Below are positions 31,022 to 49,238 of a stretch of 64,000 nucleotides of DNA, one piece after another. The stretch's first letter is position 1. The number at the start of each line of letters is the position of its first letter. The notes under the pieces are model-generated. The model had not been told where the DNA came from. It did no database searches and saw nothing but the letters and a program-made list of their open reading frames with translations. The stretch is from the sequence record LC727698.1. One strand, 5' to 3'. Position numbers and translations under genes: made by a program.

Positions 31022-32638
31022 ATGTCTATTGTATGTAAAATTTGTAATAAATCATTTCCTAGTATGATTACAAGTACACATCTAAAAACACATAACATCA
31101 CTACTGCAGAATACAAAGATCTTTATGGAAAATATTCTCTTGTATCAGATGAATATAGATCAAAGCGGTCAGAACAGTCATCTGGCATTAATAATCCTAA
31201 TTATGGAAATAAATGGTCAGACAGCATGAAAGAATCTATGTCTAATAAAAAATCTGGAACTATTCCGTGGAATAAAGGCATAGAGTTACACGATACTACT
31301 ATGTATGTGAAATCTGCAGAACAGAGAGAACTAAAGTACAAAGAAGGGATACTAACTAGGAAATCATATGTCAGAACTGTAGAAATAAATAAAAAAATTT
31401 CTGATAGTGTGAAGAAGTATGCTGCAGAAAATAAAGAAGAAGTAAAACAGAGAAGTGCCAAAGCAAAAGATACATATAGTACAAAGAAAACGTTAGGGTT
31501 AGTGCAAATACGAAAAGGATATAAGTTAACCAAATCACATAAAGAAATAGCTATACAAACATTAAATAATTATAGGGCTTCTAAAACAGCAGAATCTAAT
31601 AAACAAGTAGAAAGTAATATATCTCTTGCAAATCTAACATTATTAAATGACATAAACGAAAACAGCTTAGTGTTAAGGTGTAATATATGTAATAATGAAT
31701 GTTCTTTTACAAAACAATATTTTAGAGCTAGTAAATTTAAAATAGAATTATGTCCTGTATGTTATCCTAGAAATAGTAATAGATCTGAAAAAGAAAAAGA
31801 ATTAGAATATTTTATAACAAGTTTAGGTATTTCATGTATAAATTCTGCACGTATAAACAATAAAGAAATAGATATATTTTGTAAAGAATTAAATATTGGA
31901 TTTGAATTTAACGGATTATACTGGCATAGTGAGGATGTTTTAGAGTATTCTGGGTACAGTAAAACAAAAGATTACGAAAAGAAAATATTTTTTAGAGATA
32001 AAGGAATTAGATTAATTCAAATATTTGAAGATGAATGGGACTTAAAACAAGATATAGTAAAGAGTAGAATAAGAGCTATATTAGGAAAAACAGAACACAA
32101 AATATATGCAAGGAAATGTACTATTAAAGAAATAAATTCTAAAGTTGCAAATGATTTTGTAGAAAAAACACATTTACAAGGTAAAGGTAGAGCAAATGTA
32201 AGATTAGGGTTGTATTATAACAATGAACTAGTTTCTGTAATGACATTTTTAAATAAAGATATTACTAATAAAACATCGAGCTGTCAGATAAATCGTTTTA
32301 GTGTAAAACATAATACATCTATCCCCGGCGCCGCGGGAAAATTATTTGCTTACTATATAAACAATTATAATCCATCTAGTGTTATTTCGTATGCAGATTC
32401 TCGCTGGTCTGATGGTAATTTGTATGAACAGCTAGGATTTAAATTAGATAAACAGACACTCCCTAATTACTGGTATATAAAAGATAATGATCTTAAAAGA
32501 TATCATAGATACAATTTTAGAAAAGATAAGTTGCCTGAAACTTTACTAACAGAAAAAGAATATATGGATAGTTTGGGATGGAATAGAATATGGGATTCGG
32601 GATCTACTAAATGGGTTTGGACAAATAAAGGGGCATAA
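31022..32638 (+). mobile_element. Free-standing homing endonuclease gene (Vsr-like/Hef-like nuclease) between sheath and tube
   Basis: N-terminal CKIC...H...H Zn finger; NUMOD-like NNPNYG..W...PWNKG; EIDIF...IGFEFNGLYWHS; GIRLIQIFEDEW; C-terminal SYAD.RWS.GNLY...RIWDSG. Confidence 0.8.
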
Positions 32639-43310: not shown

Positions 43311-44297
43311 ATGGCTTCTCTTGCTGAACTACGTCAAAAATTAAAAGATCAAGAAACAAAACGTGGCACAAAATCATCTGGCAGTGCAGATAAAAGTAAT
43401 TTCCCATTCTGGGACATGAATGAAAACGACAGTGCTACTGTAAGATTTCTTCCTGATGCAAACACTGATAATACCTTTTTCTGGGTAGAAAAACAACAAA
43501 TTAAAATTCCATTTAGTGGCATTGTAGGTATGAATAGTAAACCTACAGTTGTTACTGTACCGTGTGTAGAAATGTGGGGGGAATCTTGCCCTATTCATCA
43601 AGAAATCCGTCCATGGTTTAAAGATTCTTCGTTAGAGAAATTAGCGCGTACTTATTGGAAGAAACGTTCTTATATTTTCCAAGGACTTGTACGTAAGTCA
43701 CCTCTTGTAGAACAAGAACTACCAGAGAATCCTATTCGCAAATTTACATTCGGAAGTCAGATTTTTAATCTAGTTAAATCGTCTCTATTAGACCCCGAAA
43801 TGGAAAACATTCCCACTGATTATTTAAATGGTACTGATTTCCAGATAACTAAATTAATGAAGGGCCAATATGCCGATTACGCTACATCTAAATGGGCAAG
43901 GAAAGAATCTTCGTTAACTGAAGAAGAATTCCAGGCAATCCAAACATATGGTCTGTATGATTTAAGTAAATTTTTACCTGCTAAACCTGATGCAGAAGCA
44001 TTAGCTGCTATATTCGAGATGTTCGAAGAATCGGTAGAAGGTAAAGAATATGATCCGCAGCGTTGGGGGAAATACTATCGCCCGTACGGGGTTGAAGTTC
44101 CTACTAATACTTCCGTGAGTGTACCTGTATCTAAGCCAGAACCTAAGACTACGGTATCTAGTTCTTCAGTTATAGAAGACGATAACGATGATCTTCCTTG
44201 GGAAGATACTACTAAACCTGTAGAGCCTGCCAAATCTGCTTCTAATGCGCAAGATATAATTGCGCTCATCCGCGCCCGCCAAAACAGCGGCAACTAA
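43311..44297 (+). CDS. gp32: Single-stranded DNA-binding protein, T4 gp32-like
   Basis: MASLAELRQKL, ATVRFLPD, VPC.EM.G..CPI, YWKKRSY, DY.NG.DF, acidic C-terminal tail. Confidence 0.9.
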   Translation: MASLAELRQKLKDQETKRGTKSSGSADKSNFPFWDMNENDSATVRFLPDANTDNTFFWVEKQQIKIPFSGIVGMNSKPTVVTVPCVEMWGESCPIHQEIRPWFKDSSLEKLARTYWKKRSYIFQGLVRKSPLVEQELPENPIRKFTFGSQIFNLVKSSLLDPEMENIPTDYLNGTDFQITKLMKGQYADYATSKWARKESSLTEEEFQAIQTYGLYDLSKFLPAKPDAEALAAIFEMFEESVEGKEYDPQRWGKYYRPYGVEVPTNTSVSVPVSKPEPKTTVSSSSVIEDDNDDLPWEDTTKPVEPAKSASNAQDIIALIRARQNSGN

Positions 44298-44301
44298 ATA
44301 G

Positions 44302-44330
44302 AGAGAGGGGATCGCTGATCCCCTCTCTTT
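44302..44330 (+). terminator. Intrinsic terminator after gp32
   Basis: AGAGAGGGGATC-GCT-GATCCCCTCTCT followed by TT. Confidence 0.8.
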
Positions 44331-44403
44331 AATATAACCTAAAATAGCCAAAAAGTACAACTACAATGTTGGAAGGACGGCAGTATTATAAAAAGGACAT
44401 TTT

Positions 44404-44649
44404 ATGACAAAACCATTCGATATTTCTAAATTTAGAAAAGATATTACCAAAAGTATCACTGGCATTAGTACAGGATTTAATGACCCAACTATTTGGATTA
44501 GTACCGGCAACTATACTCTTAATTATCTCATTAGTAGCGACTTTAATAAAGGCGTACCTATGGGTAAAGTAACTATGTTTGCTGGCGAGTCGGGTTGTTT
44601 GCCTGAAACTGCTAAAGTGAAAATTAGACTATCTAAGAAGCAATCTTAA
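44404..44649 (+). CDS. uvsX: UvsX/RecA N-terminal fragment (64 aa) fused to a 17-aa split-intein N-part
   Basis: WISTGNYTLNYLIS...GVPMGKVTMFAGESG then CLPETAKVKIRLSKKQS (intein block A) and stop. Confidence 0.9.
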   Translation: MTKPFDISKFRKDITKSITGISTGFNDPTIWISTGNYTLNYLISSDFNKGVPMGKVTMFAGESGCLPETAKVKIRLSKKQS

Positions 44650-44658
44650 CTGTCCAGT

Positions 44659-44698
44659 GTCTCCGTCGAGGATAAATACTTTTATCTAAAACGGAGAC
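44659..44698 (+). promoter_or_regulatory. RBS-sequestering hairpin containing a late promoter
   Basis: GTCTCCGT(44659-66)/ACGGAGAC(44691-98) occludes GGAG; inner GATAAA/TTTATC stem overlaps GATAAATA (44671-78). Confidence 0.75.
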
Positions 44699-44701
44699 TT
44701 T

Positions 44702-46135
44702 ATGGGAAATTACAATGTTCTTTCTACAAAAAACTTTAAGAAGCTATGTAATGAGTTAAACATAGTAACGATATCAGAAAAGTACATTTCTGATATACGT
44801 AAGATAGAAGATTCTGCTAAGAGCAAAGTGGATTCTGCATCTCAGCGTATGATATTAACTATGATAACTGTGAAAGTTCCCGACTTATATGATGCATATA
44901 ACAGATACTATCAGCTCAGAACAGATGGTATTAGTACAAAAACTCAAGACAGTATTTCTTATATTTTTGGAAAAGACTTCCTCGAATCTGTTAATTTACT
45001 AATCAGTAATAGATATAAAACTGCATTCCGTAAAGGAATGACAGTGGAAGAGGCATTTATAACACGTAATAAAGACTTTTCCAATAATGGTGTGTATTAT
45101 AACCAGATGACTGATAAGCAAAAGAAACGTTTATCATTATTGCTTAGTGTGTATACACCAGAAAGGTTGGAGTTTTATAAAAAGACAATTTCGTTTTTTA
45201 TTAAGTTAGATTTGACTAATTATGCAGGAAGAATGAAAAGACTGATGAAACTGGGATCTAGTACGTCTTTATATGCTAGCGTATTACGGTATGGTAAATC
45301 TGTCGGAAAAAGCACACATTCATCTGTATCTGCGGTAAAGAGAAACTATTTGCCTACTTCGATACAATATTGGATGGCAAAGGGGTTTGATGAAGATACT
45401 GCATTAGTGAAGATAAACGAACATCAACAGAAAGCAAGTGCCATGTCTTCCAAAAAACTAAAAGGCACTAGCGAATACTCTGTTCGATCAGTTGCATATT
45501 GGATTAAAAACGGGTATAGCGAAGAAGAGGCAAAAGGGAAAGTATCTAATATACAGAATACTTGGAAAAATGTATCTCAAGAAGAGCGTGATCGAAGAAT
45601 AGAATCGTGGATGACTACAATGAGTCTTAAAACAGACGAGGAGAAATCTTTGATAAACCTTAAAAAAACTCACAGCCCGGAAGGGATAATGGCAAGGACA
45701 AATTGCGATTATGATATTGCATTTAAGCAAAGCGTTGATTTTTTTAAGAAACGAAATAATTCTTCTAAAGTATCTCAAGAACTATTTTGGGGAATTGCCG
45801 AGGATATCGATACCGATGGAGTTTACTTTTCTGAACTAAACTACGAATACCCTGTTATGGGGAAAATAGTAGATTTCTATGATTCTAAAAGCAAAACAGT
45901 AATCGAATTTTATGGAAACTTTTGGCATGCAGATAGTACATATACTGATGACACACTGATATATGGAAAAACTGCTAAAGAAATAAGAGAATCGGACATT
46001 TACAGAGAAACGTTAATTAGATCATCTGATTTGGTTAGTGATTTTATAGTAGTTTGGGAAAAGGACTTTAGGAAGAATCCGAAAGAAACAATTAAAAATT
46101 TAGTTAATATTTTAAATAATAAAAGGAAATTTTAA
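44702..46135 (+). CDS. Homing endonuclease, C-terminal Vsr-like domain
   Basis: Repeated YW..KG.....A motifs; SKVSQELF, VDFYD....VIEFYGNFWHA, IVVWEKDF. Confidence 0.8.
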   Translation: MGNYNVLSTKNFKKLCNELNIVTISEKYISDIRKIEDSAKSKVDSASQRMILTMITVKVPDLYDAYNRYYQLRTDGISTKTQDSISYIFGKDFLESVNLLISNRYKTAFRKGMTVEEAFITRNKDFSNNGVYYNQMTDKQKKRLSLLLSVYTPERLEFYKKTISFFIKLDLTNYAGRMKRLMKLGSSTSLYASVLRYGKSVGKSTHSSVSAVKRNYLPTSIQYWMAKGFDEDTALVKINEHQQKASAMSSKKLKGTSEYSVRSVAYWIKNGYSEEEAKGKVSNIQNTWKNVSQEERDRRIESWMTTMSLKTDEEKSLINLKKTHSPEGIMARTNCDYDIAFKQSVDFFKKRNNSSKVSQELFWGIAEDIDTDGVYFSELNYEYPVMGKIVDFYDSKSKTVIEFYGNFWHADSTYTDDTLIYGKTAKEIRESDIYRETLIRSSDLVSDFIVVWEKDFRKNPKETIKNLVNILNNKRKF

Positions 46136-46138
46136 TAA

Positions 46139-47410
46139 ATGGAATACATCGAAAAGGAAGTAACAGTTAGTGAACTGAAGTCTCTCTACAGTAGTAATGA
46201 ATACGAAATTGAGTTAGACACACCAGATGGCTGGCAAAAACTGGGATCTTGGTTCGATAAAGGCCCTCTTAGTATGGTGACGGTAGAAACGCAGGATGGG
46301 TTAGTTACTAGATGTGCAGTAAACCATATGATCGAAGTGGTAGACGGATCGGAAACTTTTTGGACACTTGCAAAAGACTTGTACGAAGGCCAACAAGTGC
46401 TTACTGTAAACGGTGTCTCAACAATTAGTTCTGTAACTGAAAGTGGCATCGAAGAATGTTTCGATTTCGAAATACTCCACGAAAATCATCGTTACTATGG
46501 TGATGGATTCTCTTCTCACAATAGTGGCAAATCGTATATAGTATCAGGAAACATTGTAAAAGATGCACAAGAAAAGGGAATTTTTGTTGTATTACTTGAT
46601 TCAGAAAATGCACTCGACGAATCTTGGCTACATGCACTAGGTGTAGACACCGGACCGGAAAAAATGTTACGCATCTCTGTATCGATGATAGATGATGTAG
46701 CAAAAATTATTAGTGATTTTGTTAAAGATTACAAGACTAATTATGCCGAACTACCTAACAATGATCGACCAAAGGTGCTTTTTGTTATTGACTCGCTCGG
46801 AATGTTATTGACACCAACGGAAACTGCACAATTTCAAAATGGTGATATGAAAGGAGATATGGGCAGGAAAGCAAAACAATTAAAAGCATTGATTTCTAAC
46901 TGTACAAATATGTTCGGCAACTTAGACATAGGCCTTGTTTGTACTAACCATACATATGCATCTCAAGATTTATTTCAGCCCGACGCTGTAATTTCGGGTG
47001 GCAGCGGCGCAGTCTATGCCGCGTCAATTGTAGTGGCAATGCAAAAGTTAAAGTTAAAAGAAGACGAAGCAGGTAATAAAATTTCTGAAGTAGCTGGTAT
47101 TCGTGCAGTATGTAAAGTTGTGAAATCTCGATATGCAAAGCCGTTTGAGACAGTAAAAGTAAATATTCCATATGATACGGGTATGAGTCCAATATCGGGT
47201 CTATTTGACTTGTTTGAAAAAACAGGTAAACTTGTAAAACAAGGCAATAGATACAAGTACATAACCAAAGATGGTACCGAAATGCTGTATTATAGGAAAG
47301 AATGGAATGATTACGATAAACTAAAAGTAATTATGAATGAATTTACAGACGAAGACCTAGGCAATGTCGTAGAAGTGGAAGAGGGTCATTTAGAAGAGTT
47401 CGATGAATAA
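46139..47410 (+). CDS. uvsX: 128-aa split-intein C-part fused to the UvsX/RecA C-terminal fragment (295 aa)
   Basis: ...GDGFSSHN|SGKSYIVSGN, LLDSENALD, LFVIDSLGML, GDMGRKAK, TNHTY, SGGSG..YAAS. Confidence 0.92.
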   Translation: MEYIEKEVTVSELKSLYSSNEYEIELDTPDGWQKLGSWFDKGPLSMVTVETQDGLVTRCAVNHMIEVVDGSETFWTLAKDLYEGQQVLTVNGVSTISSVTESGIEECFDFEILHENHRYYGDGFSSHNSGKSYIVSGNIVKDAQEKGIFVVLLDSENALDESWLHALGVDTGPEKMLRISVSMIDDVAKIISDFVKDYKTNYAELPNNDRPKVLFVIDSLGMLLTPTETAQFQNGDMKGDMGRKAKQLKALISNCTNMFGNLDIGLVCTNHTYASQDLFQPDAVISGGSGAVYAASIVVAMQKLKLKEDEAGNKISEVAGIRAVCKVVKSRYAKPFETVKVNIPYDTGMSPISGLFDLFEKTGKLVKQGNRYKYITKDGTEMLYYRKEWNDYDKLKVIMNEFTDEDLGNVVEVEEGHLEEFDE

Positions 47411-49238
47411 ATTATGCGAAACAGATCGTATTAATATTATCAAATTACACTTCGATGATTTAAAATCTGTATCTGAATTAAAGAAAATATATGGAGTCTC
47501 TTATGATGTCATTAAAACCATCATAAGAGATGAAACGAATCGTCTGCCGTTGCAAGAAACTGATATAAAAATTTTGAAATTTAAAAAACTTGTTTCAAAG
47601 GAGTTGTTATTTGAATTACATGTAATTAAAAAACAATCATTTAATGAAATAAGAAAAACTTATAAGATTAATGAACTTCATTTAAAACAAGTGTTTAATG
47701 ATTACGGAATACCAATTGAAAAGTGTTTATATACTGCTACTAACAAGAAGCGTAAAACAAAAAAGCCTGAAGATTTTACTAAAGACTTTTTCGAACACTT
47801 AGTATATAACGAAAGACGAACAATTAGTTGGATAAAAAATAATTATAACTTTAATTTTGAAGAACTAAAACATCATTTAACACATTTAAAAATCGATTAT
47901 ACTAATTCGTTGCCACCTGCTGTAAAACATCAACAAGATAAAATATCTAGAGAAACTCTAGCAGAAGAATTAAAAATTAAATCTATTGTTGATATAATAA
48001 ATGAATACGGAATTTCTAGAACTTATGTAGAAAGCGTTATAAAAGAATACAATATACAGTATTTTACAAAACCGAAACATTCTATATTAAGTGGTAAAGA
48101 ATCAGAAATTTATCGGATGTATTATGATGAATGTATGACTACATACCAAATAGCAGAAAAATTGGGAGTATGTCAATACACCATATGGAAAATAATGGCA
48201 GATAACGGATGGAAAACACGAGAACCGATTAAAAAAATTGATTTGATTTGGAATGATATAAAAGAAGAAGTTGTTAAATTAATAGACAACGGTTATACAT
48301 TAGCTGCTTTATGTGAAAAATACGAAATAACATCTATTACTGAAAAGTTAATAGAAGAAGGTATAAAATATACAAAGGGAAATATTTCTTCTGGTCATGC
48401 AGAAATATCTGAATATGTGCGTTCATTGGGATTTAATGTAATCGACAATGATCGTACTATTATATTTCCGCGAGAAATTGATATTTTTATTCCCGAACTT
48501 AACATAGGAATAGAATACAACGGATTATATTTTCATAGCACACGAACAGAAGGAAATGTAACAAAGCATAGAGAAAAATATAGCATATGTAAACAAAAAG
48601 GTATTCGTTTAATACAAATTTTTGAAGATGAATTTATTCATAAGAAAGAACTAGTAAAGAGAAAATTAGCGCACATTTTAGGAAAATCTAATAATAAATG
48701 TTATGCAAGGAATTGTATAGTTAAAGAAATATCGGTAGCAGACAAACGAAATTTCTTTAAAAAATATCACATACAAGAAGATTCTGCATCCTCGTATGCA
48801 TATGGATTATATTATGTTAATGAATTAGTTTGTGCTATGTCTTTTCTTAAAAAGAAGAAATGTACAGAACTAGTTAGATATGCATCTTCTATGCACGTGA
48901 TCGGCGGATTTTCTAAGTTGTTGAAATATTGTATTAATAATAACAAAATAGATGTTATAAACACATATGCTGATCTCAGATGGTCGAATCCGACAAATAA
49001 TGTATATGTAAACAATGGGTTTGATATACTGTATGAGACTGATTTTAATTACACTTATGTGAGTAAAGAGGATTTTTCAAAAAGGCTTAATAGGCAAAAA
49101 TTTATGAAACACAAGTTGAAAAACATTTTATCAGATTTCGATAAATCATTAACAGAAGAAGAGAATATGAAAAATAATGGATTTTATCGAGTATACGATG
49201 CTGGCCATTTAAAATTGCAATATAAGGTTAATAAATGA
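47403..49238 (+). mobile_element. Free-standing homing endonuclease gene (Vsr-like/Hef-like) with multiple N-terminal HTH-like repeats
   Basis: EIDIFIPELNIGIEYNGLYFHS, GIRLIQIFEDE, YADLRWS, RVYDAG; paralogous to 31022-32638. Confidence 0.8.

Follow-up and report, generated by a model that had tools for sequence, protein, structure and literature searches.

Atypically split inteins with a very short N-terminal fragment (IntN) are valued tools for protein labelling, and the known examples are metagenomic, which has placed their natural biology out of reach. The closest described relative of the element reported here is VidaL, a cysteine-dependent, naturally atypically split intein with an IntN of 16 amino acids (aa), which is split just after beta-strand 2 (S1) and splices with a half-life of approximately 1 min at 37 °C (PMC13014065). 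The closest described gene arrangement is that of the 'fractured genes' of Dassa et al. (PMC2677866), in which one open reading frame (ORF) encodes the N-terminal part of a host protein fused to IntN, a second encodes a free-standing endonuclease, and a third encodes the C-terminal intein fragment (IntC) fused to the remainder of the host protein. Here, we analysed a stretch of 64,000 nucleotides (nt) of sequence record LC727698.1 (the window; all positions are window positions), in which the uvsX recombinase gene of a Pseudomonas jumbo phage of the PA5oct group is broken. Very probably, the P-loop codons of this gene carry a class-1 intein that belongs to the VidaL family and is naturally split, the break at its S1 loop being due to a free-standing Vsr-like homing-endonuclease gene.

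The locus comprises three ORFs on the plus strand. ORF1 (44404-44649) encodes 81 aa, namely a UvsX N-extein of 64 codons (44404..44595) that terminates in the first half of the Walker A motif, followed by an IntN of 17 codons plus stop (44596..44649); its C-terminal end reads ...KVTMFAGESG/CLPETAKVKIRLSKKQS, the slash marking the junction. ORF2 (44702-46135) encodes the putative endonuclease of 477 aa. ORF3 (46139-47410) encodes 423 aa, starts with MEYIEKEVTVSEL (MEYIEKEVTV...), and is preceded by an AAGGA of its own, 11 nt 5' of the start. Its first 128 codons (46139..46522) form the IntC, with blocks B (CAVNH), F (ECFDFEI) and G (SSHN), and the following 295 codons plus stop (46523..47410) form the UvsX C-extein, which opens with the Ser+1 of SGKS, the second half of Walker A; the junction reads ...YYGDGFSSHN/SGKSYIVSGN. 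Spacers of 52 nt and 3 nt separate ORF1 from ORF2 and ORF2 from ORF3, respectively. The original prediction, made from the sequence alone, had given these coordinates, lengths, spacers and junctions, and the sum of 64 + 295 = 359 aa for the joined exteins, and all of them proved correct to the base. ORF1, ORF3 and IntC have calculated masses of 8.9, 47.3 and 14.5 kDa, respectively, and the joined exteins would amount to 39.8 kDa.

ORF1 and ORF3 were used as separate pieces in all searches, never as one joined sequence. The phrog_97 profile (UvsX-like recombinase) matched residues 1-65 of ORF1 with its positions 14-84 (E=3.3e-13) and residues 128-396 of ORF3 with its positions 83-445 (E=1.7e-46), and is continuous over the break (84, then 83). 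Pfam RecA scored 40.9 bits on ORF3 (cut-off 27), the PDB structure of UvsX (9gbg) aligns to ORF1 as far as ...AGES, and PDB RecA/UvsX chains align to ORF3 beginning at residues 126-129. The broken host gene is thereby identified as a UvsX/RecA recombinase, and its exteins are collinear with intein-less homologues. The phrog_97 matches on both pieces, together with the match of IntC to VidaL (E=1.7e-35), rule out chance.

The latter match, to the PDB entries 6vgv and 6vgw, has approximately 55% identity and pairs IntC residues 5-127 with residues 23-141 of 6vgv_A. The crystallised VidaL construct terminates ...GIVSHA/SGK, and so represents an Asn-to-Ala mutant followed by a C-extein identical to that of the window. 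A metagenomic locus in IMG/VR (L044) encodes an IntC equal to the 6vgv sequence save for one residue and the engineered Asn-to-Ala; here the UvsX N-fragment ends ...VFAGESG/CLPKEAVVQIRLTKKG (an IntN of 16 aa, followed by the stop codon) and the C-side reads ...SHN/SGKSYICAGN. As this near-identical IntC comes from a fractured uvsX, VidaL itself is a fractured-uvsX intein. Judged by sequence similarity, the window intein is an orthologous allele of the VidaL family at the identical insertion site: the two share a homologous full-length IntC, block B as CA[VF]NH, blocks F and G, Cys1, Ser+1, the SGK C-extein, the split after beta-strand 2, and both the uvsX-like host gene and the site of insertion within it, and the window IntN has 10 of 16 residues in common with that of L044. 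They differ in the length of IntN (16 aa in VidaL, 17 aa in the window), in source (metagenomic, as against a cultured P. aeruginosa jumbo phage), and in the endonuclease gene, which is intact in the window but reduced to a 163-aa remnant in L044 and missing from L040. Splicing activity has been shown for VidaL (PMC13014065) and is predicted for the window allele.

Other atypically split inteins are more distant. AceL-TerL, GOS-TerL and PolB16 likewise have a short IntN (15-37 aa), a long IntC with blocks B, F and G, and a phage or metagenome origin, but their host genes encode terminase or PolB rather than UvsX; the split of the TerL inteins follows helix alpha-1 (S2) and is not at S1 as in the window intein, and PolB16 has no cysteine. 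Of these types, only the TerL-type inteins of Vi01-like phages are detectably similar to the window IntC (~31%), and this match links the UvsX intein family to the terminase inteins. These contiguous large-terminase inteins, carried for instance by Salmonella phages Maynard, Marshall and Vi01, come next in similarity to IntC among cultured phages, at ~31%. Terminase is a host gene for which atypically split inteins are known too.

All catalytic residues expected of a class-1 intein are in place (Cys1, His of block B, Asp of block F, His127, Asn128 and Ser+1), and the element is predicted to be one. Cys65 of ORF1 directly follows GESG, at the position that Cys1 occupies in the aligned contiguous inteins, and in an alignment of 11 inteins (A4) N62 and H63 of block B, C107 and D109 of block F, and H127 and N128 are all invariant. 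The HNSGK junction, i.e. the penultimate His, the terminal Asn and the +1 Ser, is common to more than 60 loci. IntN is basic (5 K/R against 1 E, pI 10.0) and IntC acidic (24 D/E against 7 K/R, pI 4.25), and the first 30 residues of IntC contain 9 D/E against 2 K/R; these residue counts and isoelectric points (pI) bear out the charge opposition between IntN and the IntC N-terminus that had been read from the sequence.

A PDB search with the 33-aa tail of ORF1, IntN included, returned no match, the match being too short, and IntN was therefore compared through natural loci. It matches the N-termini (CLPxxAxVxI/V...) of the contiguous inteins of the metagenomic proteins P0003, P0008, P0011 and P0013-15 and of Salicola phage SCTP-2, and also the IntN, 13-19 aa long, found in over 40 split loci. 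Natural IntN are mostly 15-16 aa long and follow the pattern C-L-P-x-x-A-x-V-x-[IV]-R, then a Lys-rich tail. The shortest observed, at L013:2705-2938 (ENA ERZ27289132 k119_124025), has just 13 aa (CLPETAKVKIRIK), the first 11 as in the window IntN, and is shorter than the 15 aa termed 'record-short' for natural split inteins (PMC13014065).

The boundaries of the insert are fixed by homologues that lack it or carry it in one piece. The nearest relatives without an intein, the UvsX proteins of the Rak2-like jumbo phages GAP32 (Cronobacter), XbC2 (Xanthomonas) and 2.275.O (Vibrio), are 57-64% identical to the C-extein over its full length and read ...VFAGESG/AGKSYIVSGN with no insert (alignment A1). 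As these relatives are uninterrupted at GESG/AGKS, the insert lies inside Walker A. A search with IntC returned 15 proteins, all 15 with a RecA domain, of which 8 start like ORF3 and 7 (~500 aa) contain a contiguous intein of 135-143 aa with the form ...GESG/CLP..A.V...HN/SGKS. The contiguous mini-inteins, of 133-148 aa (SCTP-2 gp204 and the metagenomic P0003, P0008, P0011 and P0013-15), share the site GESG/C...HN/SGKS and the intein family with the window element, at 46-59% identity; they differ from it as single polypeptides that would splice in cis and that have no endonuclease gene. In A1 the window IntN lines up with the contiguous-intein N-terminus and ORF3 starts a few residues on, in a loop of variable length, which supports the S1 loop, after beta-strand 2, as the predicted split point. 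The earlier proposal of a UvsX/RecA broken in Walker A by an atypically split intein is thus upheld, both by the VidaL homology and by the contiguous and intein-less homologues.

Empty alleles have Ala at the +1 position, where Ser is found throughout the intein alleles, a difference that bears on whether the two halves are joined at all. Fractured genes without an intein are known, as at an SbcD-like locus and in Aeh1 nrdA, and splicing in the window phage is predicted through homology; the intein halves might then merely bring the fragments together, with UvsX acting as a non-covalent two-piece enzyme like the endonuclease-fractured NrdA of Aeh1 and splicing absent or irrelevant. We consider this very unlikely. 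The break falls within the P-loop, such that an unspliced complex would hold ~145 residues inside GESG/SGKS, and non-covalent complementation would leave unexplained both the switch from Ala to Ser at +1 and the retention of the whole set of catalytic residues; furthermore, the homologue VidaL does splice, with a half-life of about 1 min.

A scan of IMG/VR extended the comparison to 67 loci, of which 63 gave full-length matches that were classified as split (39), contiguous (14) or unclassifiable (10). At one P-loop site, three states are seen: a contiguous mini-intein, a split intein that has an endonuclease gene, and a split intein without one. The three-gene arrangement of the window recurs in L003, L011, L012 and L013, with N-fragments of 77-82 aa and C-fragments of 422-434 aa, and, being shared by these loci at only 34-57% identity, is old and conserved. 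Within the split states, the endonuclease gene is degenerate in L044 and missing from L018, L019, L040, L062 and others. Near-identical intein pairs (L032 and L029, L044 and L040) differ only in the presence of the endonuclease gene, a difference that shows its recent gain or loss. The three states fit the published gene-breaking model (Dassa et al., PMC2677866), which is here illustrated by one intein at one site. We make no claim for a single or multiple origin of the split, as the intein tree is too poorly resolved: 30 of its 52 branches are open, and split and contiguous alleles are intermixed with 14 changes, no better than in shuffles.

Some loci merit separate mention. The 1.1-kb gap of L044 holds the 163-aa endonuclease remnant and the halves of the near-identical L040 are only ~60 nt apart, so that the two loci seem to capture stages in the decay and loss of the endonuclease. 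SCTP-2 gp204 (L081:2743-4713) and P0012 have a second intein elsewhere (...KISGG/CLVA...VVSHN/SGQ...), further downstream in SCTP-2, in addition to the contiguous P-loop intein. Inteins thus occupy at least two sites in the uvsX of this clade. In four near-identical IMG/VR loci (L014-L017) the IntC-UvsX frame is open for ~330 nt further upstream (PSCGHALRTEAEF...), and no UvsX N-fragment was recognised there by pattern search.

The same survey speaks against joining at the RNA level, in which the intervening 1.9 kb would be a self-splicing group I-like intron carrying the endonuclease ORF. The original prediction had dismissed an intron on the grounds that 52 and 3 nt of spacer are too little for one; this argument is weak in itself, because group I introns can carry ORFs, and the conclusion stands instead on the intein match and on an empty Rfam scan. 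Using cmscan, no Rfam family, group I introns included, was found in 44000-47800 at E<=10, the sole match being a chance one to the small nucleolar RNA SNORD116. A complete, conserved intein is encoded by the insert's flanks, and its catalytic residues do not vary across more than 50 loci; moreover, split loci exist with as little as 29-260 nt between the halves, as do contiguous inteins that act at the protein level. We regard an intron as extremely improbable.

A further alternative is that the uvsX locus is decaying and non-functional, the phage relying on host RecA or another recombinase. ORF1 and ORF2 are annotated as hypothetical, and jumbo phages carry many selfish elements, both of which would suit such a reading. 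Nevertheless, all three ORFs are intact in 11 of 11 sequenced phages of the PA5oct group, which are independent isolates, and no intein-less allele occurs among these 11 genomes. The product of ORF3 (gp274 in PA5oct) is marked as detected by ESI-MS/MS (tandem mass spectrometry with electrospray ionization) in the PA5oct RefSeq annotation. Conservation of the arrangement in distant metagenomic phages and of the full-length C-extein in intact UvsX of related jumbo phages, at the identities given above, is likewise hard to reconcile with decay, which we judge highly unlikely. Even in combination, the three alternatives to a trans-splicing intein remain improbable.

Our data are consistent with a model in which the separate ORF1 (UvsX residues 1-64 plus the basic IntN) and ORF3 (the acidic IntC plus UvsX residues 65-359) would be translated separately, the support for ORF3 expression being the ESI-MS/MS annotation of PA5oct. 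By analogy with VidaL, IntN and IntC would associate and fold into one HINT domain. Given the presence of all the catalytic residues, formation of a thioester at Cys1 would then be followed by attack of Ser+1, cyclisation of Asn128 and an O-to-N shift that yields a peptide bond. Splicing would restore GESGSGKS and a recombinase of 359 aa and 39.8 kDa, for which VTMFAGESGSGK is the predicted tryptic junction peptide. Gene order suggests that recombination-dependent replication may be the setting in which the spliced UvsX works, together with the products of the gp32, UvsY-like and UvsW-like genes nearby. As in other fractured genes, the endonuclease could be a selfish driver by which alleles lacking the intein or the endonuclease formerly acquired the element.

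The putative endonuclease gene in the gap (ORF2, 44702..46135) would place its nuclease domain at approximately residues 355-477 (nt 45764-46132). Its database relatives number 23, two of which are named very-short-patch-repair endonuclease by their sources. The closest full-length relatives (34-39% identity) hold the same position in the fractured uvsX loci L003, L011, L012 and L013, and the ORF2 family was present in all 15 endonuclease-bearing split uvsX loci of IMG/VR that were tested (hidden Markov model E-values 1e-56 to 1e-120). In the family alignment (22 sequences) D391, E402, G405 and H409 are invariant, and W408, D432, R435, W452 and E453 nearly so. Vsr-like homing endonucleases have motifs with counterparts of Vsr Asp51, His69, Asp97 and Phe67-Trp68, and an invariant Glu at the position of Vsr Phe62 (PMC2677866). 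The ORF2 counterparts are D391, E402, F407-W408-H409 and D432, and in the D-x10-E-x4-F-W-H signature of ORF2 the D-to-E distance of 11 and the E-to-H distance of 7 equal the spacing of Vsr residues 51, 62 and 69.

AlphaFold modelled the full ORF2 protein with a predicted local distance difference test score (pLDDT) of 84.7 and the C-terminal domain with a pLDDT of 89.8 and a predicted template modelling score of 0.83. With the C-terminal domain model, Foldseek placed E. coli Vsr among its top five matches (prob 0.69-0.90), as the best-characterised of them and with three mitoribosomal proteins above it in the domain search; the template modelling (TM) scores were 0.58/0.50 for 1cw0_A (prob 0.90, E=0.16) and 0.51/0.49 for 1vsr. 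Searches of the ORF2 C-terminus against Pfam gave DUF559 / MTES_1575 below threshold (E=0.04-0.16), and the ORF2 family profile found no Vsr match among PDB sequences. As the profile and Pfam searches stayed below threshold, the Vsr-like call rests on motifs, context and a suggestive predicted fold. On this basis we accept ORF2 as a putative Vsr-like homing endonuclease, in agreement with the earlier reading of the gap; the N-terminal ~350 residues are all-helical in the model and presumably bind DNA.

The spacer before ORF2 is also reminiscent of fractured genes, in which 15 of 16 endonuclease 5' untranslated regions have hairpins, the late-promoter element TATAAATA of T4/Aeh1 type being present in 10, and which Dassa et al. 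relate to phage Aeh1, where the endonuclease ribosome-binding site is sequestered and translation inhibited (PMC2677866). The 52-nt spacer of the window is predicted to form an RNA hairpin (44653..44706, plus strand) that contains GATAAATAC (44671-44679), with a minimum free energy of -22.8 kcal/mol and z=-4.18; none of 200 shuffles was equally stable. The ORF2 ribosome-binding site GGAG (44693-44696) lies inside the stem, in the 3' arm, 6 nt 5' of the start codon. In L003 a hairpin of other sequence (z=-7.4) occupies the same place, and GATAAATAC is found in both spacers. The window spacer carries GATAAATA, which equals 7 of the 8 letters of TATAAATA; the exact TATAAATA is found in the spacers of L012, L013, L025, L027, L032, L069 and L070, and (T/G)ATAAATA in several others. 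By analogy, a hairpin that buries the Shine-Dalgarno sequence would hold down translation of the endonuclease, and the block may be relieved on transcripts that start within the hairpin at the late-promoter-like GATAAATA.

Overall, the locus shares with fractured genes (PMC2677866) the three same-strand ORFs in the order host-N plus IntN, free-standing endonuclease, IntC plus host-C, the short spacer in which a hairpin covers the start of the endonuclease gene, the Vsr-like endonuclease, and a phage DNA-metabolism host gene. It differs in that uvsX is outside the eight enzyme types given there, and in the split site, as most of the published IntN have 88-105 aa and only the terminase locus is atypical, whereas the window intein is split at S1. 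The promoter-like element also differs, being GATAAATA in the window in place of TATAAATA. Finally, the 3' end of the endonuclease gene overlaps the IntC ORF in 15 published loci, unlike the 3-nt gap of the window; this overlap is not treated as obligatory in fractured genes (PMC2677866), and among the relatives it measures 8 nt in L003, 8 nt in L012 and 47 nt in L013.

Several observations weigh against parts of this interpretation. The Thr of the usual TxxH of block B is replaced by Ala (CAVNH), as is also the case in the active VidaL (CAFNH), and the tail SKKQS of the 17-aa IntN has no counterpart in VidaL. The spliced product in the window phage is a prediction, experimental splicing being known for the homologue VidaL. 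Full-length ORF2 matched no Pfam model at cut-off and no PHROG family, and the Foldseek E-values for Vsr are weak (0.16-2.3), with no match at E<=0.001. Neither TATAAATA nor GATAAATAC is enriched within the window, and the published PA5oct promoters are sigma-70-like (TATAATA/TTGAC); for these two reasons, a late-promoter role of the element in a PA5oct-type phage is unproven.

The intein family (PMC13014065) and the fractured arrangement (PMC2677866) were already published, and what is new is the cultured host system. As far as the searchable literature shows, three aspects are new: the presence of the element in a cultured, well-studied genus of P. aeruginosa jumbo phages, the addition of uvsX, with a documented series of states, to the fractured host genes, and an intein that was missed by the public annotations retrieved. 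A literature search found no report of a UvsX intein in PA5oct-like phages, only that of the PolB split intein of MIJ3, the motifs of which are not in the window. The cultured phages with an intein in the UvsX P-loop are the PA5oct group (split) and Salicola phage SCTP-2 gp204 (contiguous). The VidaL family can now be studied in a jumbo phage in culture, which multiplies on the laboratory strain PAO1 and for which transcriptome and proteome data exist. Such a phage opens questions in vivo, including the dependence of an essential-pathway enzyme on trans-splicing, the activity of the endonuclease, and the cost or gain of removing the element. For tool development, the survey supplies dozens of natural IntN and IntC variants, with IntN of 13-19 aa. 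It also corrects the annotation of ORF1 and ORF2, which are 'hypothetical' in several database records.

The suggestion that splicing acts as a timer or conditional switch found no support in our data. A broader reading, which we put forward as an improbable one, is that PA5oct-group phages control post-translationally how much active recombinase is available, so that the split intein would be a regulatory device for recombination-dependent replication and not a neutral parasite. Here, the structured 5' region of the endonuclease gene may shift the amounts or timing of the N- and C-fragments, and trans-splicing through Cys1 and two further conserved IntC cysteines could respond to conditions in the infected cell. 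If true, gating would be directly testable in a cultured phage-host pair.

The 6-kb region around the locus is 100% identical to that of Pseudomonas phage sp. 30-3; ten further PA5oct-group records (Arenbergviridae, Wroclawvirus), among them PA5oct, MIJ3, PAC2, Callisto, Ettore, Paride, Deifobo, Cassandra and 30-2, match it at 99.3-99.8% identity. Their annotations call the three ORFs 'hypothetical', 'RecA-like (x2)' or 'UvsX-like (x2)', an intein being mentioned in none of those retrieved. The gene order is gp32-like single-stranded DNA-binding protein (SSB), fractured uvsX, Hef-like endonuclease, two small ORFs, UvsY-like gene and UvsW helicase. The gp32-like gene (43311..44297, plus strand; Pfam gp32 E=7e-10, phrog_1192 E=3.8e-62) is the left neighbour of uvsX, and the SSB-UvsX order is kept in GAP32, XbC2 and Vibrio phage 2.275.O.

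The interval that separates the gp32-like gene from the uvsX N-fragment contains a perfect 12-bp GC-rich palindrome (44302-44328; AGAGAGGGGATC GCT GATCCCCTCTCT), which is terminator-like and was scored on the minus strand in the scan; this palindrome suggests that the uvsX N-fragment begins a new transcription unit. To the right, a second free-standing homing-endonuclease gene, for a Hef-like protein of 611 aa (47403..49238, plus strand; phrog_3339 E=2.5e-94, weak Pfam REase_MTES_1575) overlaps the end of the uvsX C-fragment by 8 nt and is not part of the intein. A BLASTP comparison of ORF2 with ORF4 gave no significant similarity, and the two are therefore not recent duplicates. GAP32, XbC2 and Vibrio phage 2.275.O have no Hef-like gene between uvsX and its right neighbour. 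A paralogue of the Hef-like gene, 39% identical over 290 aa, is located at 31022-32638 on the plus strand.

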